This document shows positions 12,702 through 18,854 of a stretch of DNA of 64,000 bases, in pieces. The DNA is from Perkinsus chesapeaki ATCC PRA-425 (Eukaryota; Protista; Perkinsozoa). The stretch spans positions 62,001 to 126,000 of the forward strand of contig JAAPAO010000002.1 of assembly GCA_013115145.1 (NCBI GenBank), in the 5' to 3' direction. A program made the position numbers and the translations under genes. Below the pieces are notes generated by a model. That model searched no databases. It saw only the letters and a program-made list of their open reading frames with translations, and had not been told where the DNA came from. Numbering within the stretch: position 1 is the first letter of the stretch; every line of letters starts with the position of its first letter.

Positions 12702-13661
12702 TCAGCACTCATCTCGGACTTCATGAGGCCACTTAGCATTTCGTAAGCCTTCCACGGAGCCAAACATAAGACCAACATAAGGCACGACTTTACAGAGTTC
12801 AGGAACTATGCCTCTATAAAGCCCCTTCACGCCGTCTGTTCCTATGATATGCTTGAAACAATGCCATGCAGTGGCAAAGCGCTTAGGTCGACCGTGAAGA
12901 CCGTCCATTTGCATCTGGCGCCGAACCAAGTCGATCGGAAAACAGAGGGAGCTGGATGTGAAGCCGCTTAGACAGCCGCTCGATATTGCCAGTATAGGCG
13001 GAAGGTCGTCTTCACCTGTGTATTGCTTGTACAAGCTCTTGACCGTGCCGAAGACCTGATCACAAAAATGCCTACTAGGAGATTCTCACTGAACTACCTC
13101 GAAATTGATTGCGAAGGTTGGCATGACGTAGCACAGAGTGGGCACTATACCTCGGTAAAACGCCCGGAAGCCTTCCTCTTTGTTAATTAGCACGAGACAA
13201 TGACCAATGCCTTTGTAGTGGGCCGTTTTAGTTTGAGTGGCCAGTCGAGCCTTCACGACATCCAGAGGGTAGCACGTTATGCAAGCACATGCCCCTGCGG
13301 AGGCTCCGGCGGCCAAGTCGGCGAATCTCCAGTTCAGCGGGAAGAAACTCTTTACCCGATCCTGGACCAAAAAAGTGATACCGGCGTAGGGAAACCTATG
13401 CAGGCAACTGGCACCATTCCCCTTCCACATAGAGAAGAAGCCTTCCTCAGTTATCATCTTAGCAACGGACTCTAAGAGCCGCGTGTTGTTGGGTGATCCT
13501 TGAATGTAAAACTTATGTGGCCGCATCGACTGTACTTGCATCAAGATTGTTGTCCGACTGAGGGGGGCAGTGCAGGACTTGGCAATACATGCACCCAGAC
13601 CTCCCGAAAGAAAGGACTTCGTTGCTTTCCACGTTTCATCATCAATTGGGAGGGTCGTCAT
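12702..13661 (-). CDS. Mitochondrial carrier family (SLC25) protein; two exons
   Basis: Three Px(D/E)xx(K/R) signature repeats (APLSRTTI [degenerate], YPLDVVKARL, FPIDLVRRQM) plus GFRAFYRG and GLYRG motifs. One intron at about 13050-13096. Confidence 0.92.
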
Positions 13662-14167: not shown

Positions 14168-17100
14168 ATGTCCACCGGGAGCCCCCCAGTGAGCACCTGT
14201 TGCAGCGCAACCGATGTTGCAAAGTCATCACATCCGTTGGACCCTGTGGTAGCTCCATCAGCTCATCCCGAGTGGGGCTCTAATATAACCACTCGATGGA
14301 ATGAAGAAGGTGGCATGTATTGGATTGAAGAGGAGATGAAGTCCAAGTTATCGCTTGTACCACTCACTGACCAGGTAGGGTATCTGCTTGCCTGCGTATA
14401 GCGCAGTTGCCAGGCCGCATTGGAAACGATTGCTCTCTTGGGGCGTCGTTTACTCGAAATGGATGTACATCAGCTTGAGCGGGCTGTGTATCGTCTGGGC
14501 ACAGACAGGTGCCGAGAGTTCCTTGCAATCACTGAGAAAAAGATCCAGGAAAATGTACCGTTTGTTCATATGCACGTGTCTTCCCATCTATCCTTCAGGC
14601 GCCAGAAGACGCGCTCTTTCTCTACACACAGGACGGCAGCAACCGCGCTCGAACCCCAGGTGGAGTATTCTGGAAGATCATTAAAACAAGCAAGGGCGTC
14701 AATCCAGAGGACAAGAGGTGACCTGTCAGTGGAAGTAGGAGACACTTCGCCCACTTTTCGTCAGTTTCATCTATCGAGGCAACACTACGAGGCAGAATAA
14801 GATTCGCAGAGACAAAGCGGTAGGCTGAAACCATGTGTCCCATTGGTCCTACTGTTGGAGCTTCAGCGTATCGATCTCATATTCACCAATCTAAACAGCT
14901 TCGCACCAACCGATCCAAGAGTTCGGGCGGTAGGTCACCGAGATGGTTGGAATCCGTATCTTGCGCTATTAGATACGCGACATCGTAGCCAGCCTCGGCA
15001 TGACCGAGACCACAATTGCAGAGCGACTGATCGAGAAAAAAGTAGATGAGCTTATGCGCCTCATGTGGTGCATCTGAGTATCCCTAGGGCGTCGACTTCG
15101 CCCGCGCCTTACTAGCCCAGAGCCTGGAGCTCTACTCTGACGCCTCCAAGGATCCGTCCCAAGTCGGAGAGAACATCTTGAGAAAGAAGGCCAGTGTAGA
15201 GATTGGTGACGCTGAGGATGTGCAAGTGAAGCGTAGGCATTCAGACCTTATCCTTCTTTGTGATTCGCGCAATCCAGGTACTCCGGGCGGCGTATTCGCC
15301 CAGCTAATTAAAGCCGATGAAAAGTAAGCATTCACATTACTTTTTACCAGGCGTTGGTTCTCCTCAGTATCAGTATTGAGGATAAGAGCTACATATTCGC
15401 TTTGTCCCGTGGAGGCAAGACCGTTACCAACCGACATCGCAGAGGCAGAGGCAGACCGGCCATGTTTACTAAGCAGTATCAGGACGCCTCGTGGAAGGCC
15501 TGTGGTGGAGTGGGCACACCTGGAAGGTCGGTGCTCCAACGATCTTTATTCGATCACCATGACTTTGCAGGTTTATTGGTGACATGGACTATCAGCAGCG
15601 CGGCGATGCCTTACCGGCCAGTATTCCTCCTCCGGAAGGAAATATGGCTGGCTTCATGATCCTCCCTGAAGGTGCTTAACGGGGGCTCCAGGATACTCAA
15701 TAATACTTTTGATGGTAGATGCTCCAGAACGAGTGATCGTCCTCGAACTTGCCGCTGGACTGGGAGTGAATATGTCTCTGATCCACGTATTATTCAGCTC
15801 GCTATCGAGGTGCATATTTCATGCTCCTAGGTACATTTCCTTGAACGTCTTGTCGTAAGGAAGGGGGTACCAATCGCGGTGGAGCTCTACGAGGCTACTA
15901 AGGTAATCGTCCTGCTAAGGTGCCACTAGGAGTCTTCTGTATGGCAGAGGATTGAAAAGGAGTGCGGGGGTCGCCTCGGTGGGGTGGTGACAAGGCTGAT
16001 CAAGGAAGATGCCAGGTGCGCCACTTTGCCGGGCGCTAAAGAAAGATTGCATTCGCAGGTTCACGGAGGAAGACGTAGCATTTATATACAACGTTGCACC
16101 GGCACAGGAGGCCAGTGCTGCCGCGCAGTCCAGTCCTATGAGAGAGATCATAAATACAGCCGAAGAATCAGTAAACCGCTCTCACCGCGTTCGCTCGCGG
16201 ATGGATCTCGTAGGCACGCTTCAAACGCTTGTTGGCTGAGATGGAAGTGATGAACCGAATCTGCGTTGGGCTTAAGATCCATGACCAGCTCATGGCGGAG
16301 AGAATGATTCATAGGAAGGGACTCACGTGAGACTCGGGCGATATGACGTCTATTGTGCTTTCTGCGATTTACTACACAGGCGTCCGTCAGGTACACAAGC
16401 GCACTTTACGAAGCTGTGATGAAGATTGAGGATGCCGGGGGTATGTTGAGCGATGACGGTACGAGAAAGAGAACCCCTGCAGCAGTCTTTATTAAGCTTT
16501 TCAAGGAACAGTAATTGTAAGCCATACGGTGGTGTTATTATTTTCTGGTATTAGAGCCACGCCTGAAGAAATAGACTTTGTCCTGTCGGACACCATGTCT
16601 TGGTGGAAGAAGCCATTGGATCTCGGGGCCAATGCCGCGGCTATGGTCAGTGATCATGGTGCGTCTTGTGAGTTTACTCGCCTACCTCACAGTTGGTCTG
16701 TTCAGATGACGACGATCAGTACAACAGTGAAGTGGCCCGCACCTTGGCGGAGGTAGGTTCGAGTAGCTTTCCCCTCTCTGCGCACGCCCTTCACAGGGAA
16801 TCCTGCTTGAGCTGGAGCGTCTGCGTCTGCCTGCATCGGACTGGATTATCGTCGAGCGAGCTGTTGAACGTGTCGGGCCTTCTGTCTGTCGCCGCATGCT
16901 CTCCCGAACTAAACGCTTCTTCGAGCGCGACTTCAGGGTAAGGTGGAAAACACACGGGAACTACCTGCCTGAGCTGCTCTTAGGCTAACGGTGGCTCAAC
17001 TTCCCCGCATATGGAAACTCCTGGGAGAGTTTGGGCTGGCCTTCTGCTTCACAAGGCTGGGTAGTCCTCATCAGGCTTGGTAGCTTGTGGCTCCTATAGT

Positions 17101-18854
17101 CCTTTCCATCTCAGGGTGTCCCGCGAGGACCTCAACTACATATTCGGTGTAGCTACAGTGTCAAGAGCAGCAAAGGATCCAGGCGCTCCATCAAGTGGCG
17201 GACTTGTAGTTCCAGATGTGGTCGAGTGAGCCTCCCCGCTCCCACTGTTTTCATCCATGTCTTTAGGCCCCCGTCCAAGTCACACCAGCAGCTAGCCAAA
17301 GCCCTCACACTTGGGTTGTCCATGCTGACTATCACAGCCAACGATCTCGAGGTCACTGGCAGGGTCGTTGAACGACTTGGTACTGATGTTGCTCGGTAGC
17401 GACCATTCTTGTCGACCCCGGTTATCCAAACCCTTTCTCAGGGATATGCTTTCCACGACACAAAGGATTGAAGAGGACGGCGGAGAGATGTCCCGTGATG
17501 GAACTCGAAGGAAGACTCCATTGAACGTGTTCCTTAGTCTGCTCAAATTCAAGCGGGAACGTTTCGGGTAGCTGTTGGAAGTGTCCGACTATTTTCTGAT
17601 GTTCCGAATGTTGTAGAGTGACAGACGAGGACATTCGTTACATCTTTGAGCACTCCAAGAGGCTTCGTCGAGATACTATCCGGGAGGACATGCACTATGT
17701 AATGCTTGCTTGGATCGATCTCTTCGTTTACTATCATTCTCAGGCCCCTTCATTATTCACGCCGATCCGGCCATTCTCTCAACTCGAAAAATCTGGCCGG
17801 GACAGAGACACGATCGACTTCATAAAGGTGAACTGCGAAACAATGGCTTCGTTGTACTTGGCATTATTTCTCCAGAGCTTTCTGGTTCCTGCCCTGCCGT
17901 GCCTTGAGTACATACCTATCCAGGATCCAAGATTGGACACTGTCATCGCAGGAACGGTGTTCCTCGGCCCCGCCAAGATTAGGTAAGGAAAGATCTCTGG
18001 AAATGGGTAGCTTGCTGATGTGCGCAGTATGGTGGAACGGGCAGTGTATACCTTCGGCTCGGACTGGGTGCACGAGACTTTGCAGAAGATCAACGATGAT
18101 ATGATGGCCGCGGAGGATTCTGACGTGAGCTCTTCGCTTGTTTGAGAAATGACCATGTTATCAGTTTTCCTGCACTAATGCTTTCAAGAAAGAAATCAAG
18201 GGGCACGGTACCATGGCGCAATATGAATTTGTGGTTGCTCAAGCGTGCGAAGCAAATGTGAGAACGCCCTACTGCTTGTAGACGCATTCGATCGCCTGCA
18301 GGTTCCTAAGCCGGACGAGCTATCAGGTTTCAAAAAAGTGGACTTGGCGCCACGAGTGAGTTTTGCCATTCGCTGGTTCAGTTGTTAGTCAATTACGTTT
18401 GCCATTAGCCTATTTCTACGTTCCGTAACTCACACGGCAAGGGCAAGGGTAAGGGAGGAAAAGGCAAGGGGAAGGGGAAAGGCAAGGGCGATGCTGGAAA
18501 AGTGAGGTCGGATAAATCCTGGGTGTCTAAGTGGGTCTTTCCTAGGGATGGGCGCGGGGCCGTTCCAACTGGAAGCACAATTATCAAGAAGAAGATCGCC
18601 CGGCTCCTGTACTGAGCAGGAAACGTGAGAGTCCTGAAAGAATGGATGAAGATGGATTCGTAATCCTTCCGAGGGTCAGTCGATTGCAGCTTCTCGATCA
18701 GGTTACTGTCAAACAACGCCGCGGTGGGCGTAAGTCTCTAGAGGCTGAAGGCGTAGAAATACGACCAGCCTTGACCATCACCAAATACGCTGACCACCTG
18801 GCGTCGGCGGATCAGGCTGAATCAGCGCAGCCGTCTCCGAACACACGGGAATGA
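14168..18854 (+). CDS. Multi-exon protein with at least six tandem PHAX RNA-binding (RNA_GG_bind)-like repeats and a GK-rich tail
   Basis: Repeated signatures RTPGGVFWKIIK (about 14650), KRTPGGVFAQLIK (about 15279), RLGGVVTRLIK (about 15972), RTPAAVFIKLFK (about 16470), ETPGRVWAGLL (about 17014) and KTPLNVFLSLLK (about 17512). Most are preceded by a RAVxxLG-type helix and followed by an (E/D)(E/D)xxFIY-type helix. A single gene is inferred; not every junction was resolved. Confidence 0.7.
18436..18489 (+). repeat. Gly-Lys coding low-complexity repeat (GKGKGKGGKGKGKGKGKG)
   Basis: ggcaagggcaagggtaagggaggaaaaggcaaggggaaggggaaaggcaagggc is read directly from the sequence. Confidence 0.85.

Follow-up and report, generated by a model that had tools for sequence, protein, structure and literature searches.

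Does a run of short exons at positions 14168-18854 of a 64,000-nucleotide stretch of the Perkinsus chesapeaki ATCC PRA-425 genome (contig JAAPAO010000002.1; we call this whole stretch the window) encode one long protein built from many PHAX-type RNA-binding domains, or several smaller proteins, and what would such a protein do? PHAX, the export adaptor for small nuclear RNAs (snRNAs), has one RNA-binding domain (RBD) in an otherwise disordered protein (PMC12350170). The initial annotation of the window had read the locus as a single protein with at least six such domains in tandem. We find that 14168-18854 very probably is one gene for a multi-PHAX-domain protein, and we examine below its units, its age and its likely role.

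The gene lies on the + strand and consists of 32 small exons, with an ATG at 14168 and a stop codon at 18852-18854. The spliced frame is open over all junctions, and the joined translation contains 1,089 codons plus the stop. All 31 introns are GT-AG with a pyrimidine at position -3; they measure 39-64 nt (mode 44), and 25 of them are 43-49 nt long. The splice model was built by hand and then checked against P. marinus and P. olseni proteins, which mended three junctions. The exons are:

Exons 1-8, + strand: 14168-14374, 14414-14554, 14599-14717, 14765-14819, 14867-14929, 14973-15041, 15088-15232, 15278-15323
Exons 9-16, + strand: 15368-15526, 15571-15671, 15719-15786, 15831-15902, 15948-16015, 16059-16170, 16214-16326, 16391-16510
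Exons 17-24, + strand: 16555-16645, 16693-16752, 16797-16937, 16984-17060, 17115-17225, 17267-17395, 17442-17567, 17617-17698
Exons 25-32, + strand: 17744-17827, 17876-17982, 18028-18124, 18165-18257, 18302-18355, 18409-18501, 18546-18659, 18702-18854

Most junctions up to ~18700 are backed by P. marinus and P. olseni protein models; those at ~16511-16800 lie outside both orthologue models, and the last junction is without orthologue backing. The P. marinus protein maps to the locus in 11 colinear pieces and to no other place in the 41.7-Mb assembly. Because the introns are so short and regular, there is no room between units for promoters or intergenic DNA, and the spacing of the units along the DNA is itself due to these introns. 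Six-frame translation of the DNA placed every motif listed in the initial annotation at its given position, on the + strand and in one spliced frame. With an open spliced frame and junctions backed by orthologues, a single protein is the best reading of the region, as had been proposed.

Two earlier versions of the splice model were set aside. An automatic model that maximised open reading frames (ORFs) over-extended its exons and ran through the stop codon, and two 27-nt introns of our first model gave way to introns of 39 and 45 nt on comparison with P. marinus and P. olseni. Three introns (17699-17743, 17828-17875 and 18660-18701) are multiples of 3 nt without an in-frame stop, such that their retention would keep the frame. 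We treat them as introns since these segments are absent from the P. olseni protein; a 122-codon ORF over 17618-17986 arises in the raw reading because such stop-free, frame-keeping introns are retained in it.

The spliced protein can be divided into an N-terminal segment, seven predicted units, linkers and a basic tail (pI, isoelectric point):

14168-14374, + strand: N-terminal exon; acidic, pI 4.6; a Trp-rich, acidic stretch, then MKSKLSLVPL; no Pfam match
14414-14819, + strand: PHAX unit 1; loop RARTPGGVF, closing helix PEDKSFIY
14867-15422, + strand: PHAX unit 2; loop VKRTPGGVF preceded by an insert of ~30 residues, closing helix IEDKSYIF
15423-15670, + strand: linker 2-3; basic, with the motif YQ..W..PG.[FI]G; 80% identical to P. 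marinus; no family match
15671-16089, + strand: PHAX unit 3; loop shortened to GGRLGGVV, closing helix EEDVAFIY; 92.5% identical to P. marinus
16214-16585, + strand: PHAX unit 4; loop RKRTPAAVF, closing helix PEEIDFVL
16729-17145, + strand: PHAX unit 5; loop HMETPGRVW, its basic residues lost, closing helix REDLNYIF; 91.8% identical to P. olseni
17283-17653, + strand: PHAX unit 6; loop RRKTPLNVF, closing helix DEDIRYIF
17654-17923, + strand: linker 6-7; begins with APSLFTP..PF; the most conserved non-domain segment, 94.8% identical to P. olseni
17924-18257, + strand: unit 7; degenerate, PHAX-like; acidic, pI 4.6; N-terminal helices kept (ERAVYTFG), TPGGVF loop lost; 89.0% identical to P. olseni
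18302-18854, + strand: basic tail; pI 10.0; (GK)n run and mixed-charge C-terminus; 67% identical to P. olseni; no family match

The units differ most clearly in the loop. The basic form, (R/K)x(R/K)TPxxVF, is kept in units 1, 2, 4 and 6, altered in unit 3 (GRLGGVV) and unit 5 (METPGRVW), and lost in unit 7. The closing helix is found in units 1-6. That of unit 2 had been left untraced when the other repeats were described, and we place it at ~15380-15403 (IEDKSYIF). The seventh copy, previously taken for a partial one, is instead a complete but degenerate unit that occupies the whole of 17924-18257. The GK-rich tail that had been noted after it is present as a (GK)n run at ~18436-18500. In charge, units 1, 4 and 5 and the tail are basic, in contrast to the acidic unit 7 and N-terminus. 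Three Perkinsus species have ~30 residues of the first exon in common without a single difference. The Trp-rich, acidic stretch and the segment MKSKLSLVPL, a match to the class-1a pattern of nuclear export signals, fall at residues 44-66.

Membership of the PHAX family was assessed with the Pfam family PF10258 (PHAX_RNA-bd; gathering cut-off 25 bits), the scans being made exon by exon or on database orthologues. Three core exons exceed the cut-off on their own, those of unit 1 (14599-14715, 31.5 bits), unit 4 (16392-16508, 39.2 bits) and unit 6 (17443-17565, 36.4 bits). A six-frame search of the genome with the same profile gave three matches above the cut-off, all within this gene (16386-16508, 38.4 bits; 17428-17550, 35.8 bits; 14623-14718, 29.3 bits). 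The Pfam check called for in the initial annotation, run exon by exon, thus places units 1, 4 and 6 in the family. The exon with the helices of unit 1 scores 14.9 bits in a longer version, 14402-14554 (profile positions 7-38), and has no match at E<=0.001 as 14414-14554; the remaining exons are singly too short or too diverged for Pfam. The P. marinus orthologue XP_002777834.1 contains four PF10258 stretches (140 bits), and unit 6 of the P. olseni orthologue scores 55.8 bits.

The weaker units were compared with two further profiles. An internal profile, made from units 1, 4 and 6, detects units 2, 5 and 3 at 34, 35 and 16 bits, respectively, and the start of unit 7 weakly. A canonical profile was made from ~126 PHAX domains from outside Perkinsus, and 1000 composition-matched shuffles of each unit served as controls. 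Against this profile unit 2 scores 31.8 bits (shuffle maximum 5.0), unit 3 14.7 bits (5.5) and unit 5 6.5 bits (5.1); against the internal profile unit 5 reaches 40.2 bits (shuffle maximum 4.0). With both profiles units 2, 3 and 5 score above 1000 of 1000 shuffles. Unit 7 is marginal, its score being reached by 1 of 1000 shuffles with the internal profile and by 10 of 1000 with the canonical one. The linkers, the N-terminus and the tail give no signal against the canonical PHAX profile. When a small orthologue alignment of each weak unit was compared with the canonical PHAX alignment in hhalign, the probabilities were 98.8% for unit 2, 96.2% for unit 3, 96.5% for unit 5 and 88.8% (60 columns) for unit 7. 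With three exons passing Pfam and units 2, 3 and 5 passing the profile and shuffle controls, the count of at least six tandem PHAX-type domains holds. Judged from their sequences, the protein has six genuine PHAX-type units and a seventh in which the helices are kept and the loop is lost.

A search of 1.84 billion representative proteins with a profile of the three core exons gave 789 matches at E<=0.001. The closest relatives are the Perkinsus orthologues and two metagenome proteins:

XP_002777834.1, P. marinus: 550 amino acids, units 1-4; automatic UniProt name 'Phosphorylated adapter RNA export protein'
XP_002764441.1, P. marinus: 214 amino acids, units 3-4; the same automatic UniProt name
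KAF4704367.1, P. olseni: partial, units 1-2
KAF4671420.1 (P0006), P. olseni: 1,147 amino acids, units 5-7 merged with ankyrin repeats and a kinase
P0001, JGI/IMG metagenome protein: 797 amino acids, five clear units and a degenerate one
P0002, JGI/IMG metagenome protein: 527 amino acids

Over 553 residues the P. chesapeaki protein shares 80% identity with the P. marinus fragment, and over 485 residues 78% with the P. olseni fragment, which sets its genome apart from both species. It has the same units and most splice junctions in common with them, but the retrieved models are all partial or merged, and none contains the whole seven-unit protein. Between the Perkinsus species the units are 80-92% identical and most linkers 54-67%. 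The units without the basic loop (3, 5 and 7) are among the most conserved, at 92.5, 91.8 and 89.0%.

P0001 and P0002 are 27-33% identical to the Perkinsus protein and colinear with it, their units standing in the same order. In P0001 Pfam recognises four PF10258 stretches (211 bits) and the canonical profile five. Pairwise unit scores match Perkinsus units 1, 2, 4, 5, 6 and 7 one-to-one with P0001 units 1-6, and the degenerate unit 7 has one-to-one partners in both P0001 and P0002. Linker motifs are also held in common: YQ..W..PG.[FI]G is present in both metagenome homologues, and APSLFTP is invariant in P0001, P0002 and P0006. The two proteins differ from the Perkinsus protein in that they have no unit 3, which is present in the Perkinsus sequences, and no KG tail, and end at most ~15 residues past unit 7. 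As P0001 comes from a metagenome contig without annotation, we take it to be a single unbroken ORF; the loci of P0001 and P0002 were not found in two metagenome contig scans, and an ESM Atlas look-up of P0001 returned generic single-domain PHAX clusters only, with scores below 0.9. Since six units retain one-to-one orthology at ~27% identity, the array must be ancient, with each position kept individually. The idea of an amplified array therefore fails in so far as it implies that the copies arose recently, given that all seven units but unit 3 have counterparts of this kind in so distant a protein.

Folds were compared on AlphaFold2 models of orthologues, namely the P. marinus fragment (80% identical) and P0002, both built from shallow alignments. 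Each model shows four blocks in which three helices are followed by a loop, in many cases with a small hairpin, and by two short helices. In a Foldseek search with the P. marinus model, the only matches at probability 1.00 were the Cryptosporidium parvum domain 2w4s (template-modelling score, TM, 0.74 on the target; root-mean-square deviation, rmsd, 1.6 Å) and the PHAX-RBD 2xc7 (TM 0.64), both at E 0.12. VIA-align, a structure alignment that here places each Protein Data Bank (PDB) entry once per model, set 2w4s on P. marinus unit 4 (Z 10.9, rmsd 0.9 Å over 70 residues, 31% identity) and 2xc7 on P. marinus unit 1 (Z 8.5, rmsd 7.6 Å over 99 residues). Units 2 and 3 of the P. marinus model and units 5-7 of the P0002 model are represented by the helix pattern only.

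How unusual is this architecture? Among the best 150 of the 789 representatives plus one cluster member, 138 proteins have one PHAX domain, and arrays of at least four units are confined to the Perkinsus lineage and the related metagenome proteins. The other multi-domain proteins in this set have two or three PHAX copies; they include a bacteria-like metagenome group with a C-terminal region in common, one MMETSP marine eukaryote transcript and a nematode model. Six of them (P0003, P0008, P0011, P0032, P0041 and P0043) resemble the Perkinsus protein in their tandem PF10258 domains and differ from it in having two or three copies and other flanking domains, and their units do not correspond one by one to those of Perkinsus. 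The two domains of P0007 (Dictyocaulus viviparus KJH44137.1, a nematode sequence) are exact internal block duplications, most likely an artefact of assembly or gene modelling. Our literature search turned up no account of proteins with several PHAX domains, none of PHAX in Perkinsus or another alveolate, and none of 2W4S. The statement that no protein of this architecture had been described thus agrees with our literature search and is too broad for the databases, which hold Perkinsus fragments (XP_002777834.1, with four stretches) and proteins with two or three domains. In other words, the architecture is already present in databases as hypothetical or automatically named fragments, and we found no paper describing the array.

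The same collection of matches contains other arrangements of the domain. P0008, P0014, P0024, P0032 and P0041 have one or two PHAX_RNA-bd domains followed by a common, unannotated C-terminal region of ~130 amino acids, and a single-domain relative with that C-terminal region comes from a Chloroflexota metagenome-assembled genome. Prokaryotic PHAX-type domains with a conserved partner domain may merit a separate study. Two eukaryote-like proteins combine the PHAX RBD with other domains, P0103 with CCHC zinc knuckles and P0143 with a U-box-like C-terminus, fusions from which it follows that the PHAX RBD is a mobile RNA-binding module.

The function suggested for the array rests in part on its being the only PHAX-type locus detected. 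Searches with PF10258, the core-exon profile and the P. marinus protein, made exon by exon with the best candidates scored, found no other PHAX-type locus in the genome, so the separate single-domain PHAX that the initial annotation had advised looking for was not detected. One further candidate, C1103 9884-9976 (17.9 bits, E 0.096 for PF10258), was judged spurious, being in a K/E-rich, coiled-coil-like ORF without the loop motif. Perkinsus uses spliced-leader (SL) trans-splicing (PMC3101222), as had been presumed for the lineage from which the window comes, and short capped RNAs are therefore abundant there.

A single PHAX RBD binds a few nucleotides of single-stranded RNA (ssRNA), weakly and without sequence preference (PMC12350170), and each unit of the array would be expected to do the same. 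Units 1, 2, 4 and 6 probably contact RNA, because they keep the basic (R/K)x(R/K)TPxxVF loop; together with the basic tail they could give high-avidity, multivalent binding. Units 3, 5 and 7, well conserved despite loss of the basic loop, are probably structural or partner-binding. Such a division of labour among the repeats, in which four keep the basic loop and three have lost it yet rank among the most conserved, would be of interest in itself. Because it is the only PHAX-family protein detected in the genome, the protein is most likely the lineage's handler of short capped RNA polymerase II transcripts (snRNAs and SL RNA), and it may act in their nuclear export.

These proposals deserve different degrees of belief. 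That the protein is a multivalent RNA binder is likely. That it is specifically an export adaptor for snRNA or SL RNA is a tentative and less probable suggestion, and we would not lean on it. Taken as a whole, the best explanation, which we hold to be somewhat probable, is a single protein of ~1,089 amino acids with six PHAX domains, a degenerate seventh and a KG-rich tail that handles short capped RNAs. A bolder and rather improbable extension is that in Perkinsea an ancient seven-unit array, as the sole PHAX-family protein, has replaced canonical PHAX, its binding and non-binding units together packaging and exporting snRNAs and the highly abundant SL RNA of a lineage that trans-splices; if true, the export of small capped RNAs would have been solved there in a way different from the metazoan one.

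Several observations weigh against the favoured explanation. For a single mRNA the evidence consists of gene models plus an ORF of one distant relative. Confidence in the structural models is low to moderate (mean pLDDT, the predicted local distance difference test score, 56.4 for the P. marinus fragment and 57.6 for P0002), and of the units only 1 and 4 have an individual match among solved PHAX-type folds. A divergent single-domain PHAX gene split by introns could escape a genome search made exon by exon on the best candidates. The export signal pattern is non-specific, with nine matches in the protein, eight of them inside folded units; the N-terminal occurrence is only a lead. The adaptor function of canonical PHAX lies in modules outside the RBD (PMC12350170): the ST2 phosphorylation cluster, a cap-contact segment, a motif for ARS2 recognition and the W118 helix, of which the last binds the cap-binding complex and runs on into the CRM1-binding export signal (human residues 112-162 with the cap-contact segment; PMC12350170). 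A profile of this Trp-helix, export-signal and cap-contact region, made from 17 proteins, all metazoan, and consisting of short motifs, detected no such region in the Perkinsus-type proteins. We regard the missing match to a cap-binding-complex and CRM1 module as weak negative evidence.

The same facts can be read in other ways, and they bear unequally on each. It is very hard to maintain that the region holds several independent genes with one or a few domains each, the long model being an artefact of joining. The public Perkinsus models are indeed fragmentary (one of 550 amino acids ending in ...FKEQ, a partial one of 362 amino acids and one starting inside unit 5), but two of the breaks have an identifiable origin: the P. 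marinus model stops inside an unspliced 44-nt intron and so loses the closing helix of unit 4, which the next exon supplies, and the P. olseni model KAF4671420.1 begins at an internal Met within unit 5. Moreover, the gaps between coding pieces are all GT-AG segments of 39-64 nt, and P0001 has its units in one ORF. More of a contender, although still a less probable account than the handling of short capped RNAs, is that there is one multi-PHAX protein that serves as a general ribonucleoprotein scaffold or RNA chaperone, in mRNA storage, translation control or nuclear RNA surveillance, much as vigilin uses its KH domains. The PHAX RBD occurs in many unrelated architectures (P0103, P0143 and the bacteria-like proteins with one to three copies), so the domain alone is no sign of export; the lack of a detectable module for binding the cap-binding complex or CRM1, as judged with the metazoan-only profile, and the long basic KG tail fit such a role as well. 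Against it stand the failure to detect another PHAX locus, which leaves this gene the sole candidate seen if Perkinsus needs PHAX function, and the N-terminal peptide, invariant in three species, with its Trp-rich acidic stretch and export-signal-like pattern.

A third reading turns on the neighbouring genes, which are as follows:

12705-13661, - strand: mitochondrial carrier gene (Mito_carr, E 1e-41 and 4e-22 in two exons); upstream of the array gene and divergent from it
19069-~21400 and beyond, + strand: ankyrin-repeat protein kinase gene; directly downstream of the array gene

The array and the ankyrin-repeat kinase might belong to one much larger protein, with the PHAX units as its N-terminal RNA-binding arm; RNA binding would then regulate or localise the kinase. 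In P. olseni KAF4671420.1 units 5-7 do run on into ankyrin repeats and a kinase domain, in the window both coding regions share a strand with ~215 nt between them, and the parent protein of 2w4s, in which the domain occupies residues 387-459, is called 'Ankyrin-repeat protein'. We nevertheless think this improbable. The in-frame stop at 18852-18854 could be avoided only by atypical introns of 32 nt, as against the 39-64 nt of those accepted; the similarity to P. olseni ends abruptly at ...DHLA and returns only with AWFVAVK, and the P. olseni peptide that bridges the two resembles translated non-coding DNA. The kinase gene could have a start of its own at one of the in-frame ATGs, 19069 and 19123, and P0001 and P0002, ending within ~15 residues of unit 7, have no ankyrin or kinase part. 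The merger with the kinase in KAF4671420.1 is probably an artefact of gene prediction. Public Perkinsus annotations of this gene are fragmented or kinase-merged, and the single-protein model presented here could correct them.

As one protein that would handle short capped RNAs, the array becomes a candidate for the recognition or export of such RNAs outside animals, including the SL RNA of alveolates. Perkinsus is an oyster parasite and is described as amenable to culture and transfection.

Three known systems offer points of comparison. With PHAX itself the Perkinsus protein has in common the PF10258 domain, the (R/K)RTPGGVF loop and the closing helix ending in ...IF; PHAX, however, has one RBD in a largely disordered chain of ~400 amino acids, whereas the Perkinsus protein has 6+1 units in 1,089 amino acids. 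The C. parvum 'novel RNA-binding domain' 2W4S, which also comes from an alveolate, is the best structural and sequence match among solved structures, but it was crystallised as a single domain, residues 387-459 of a parent that the depositors named 'Ankyrin-repeat protein'. Vigilin, with its 14-15 KH domains, places many weak, non-specific ssRNA-binding modules in series. It provides our working analogy for the way in which serial ssRNA-binding modules could give avidity in the Perkinsus array, from a fold and a family unrelated to those of PHAX.

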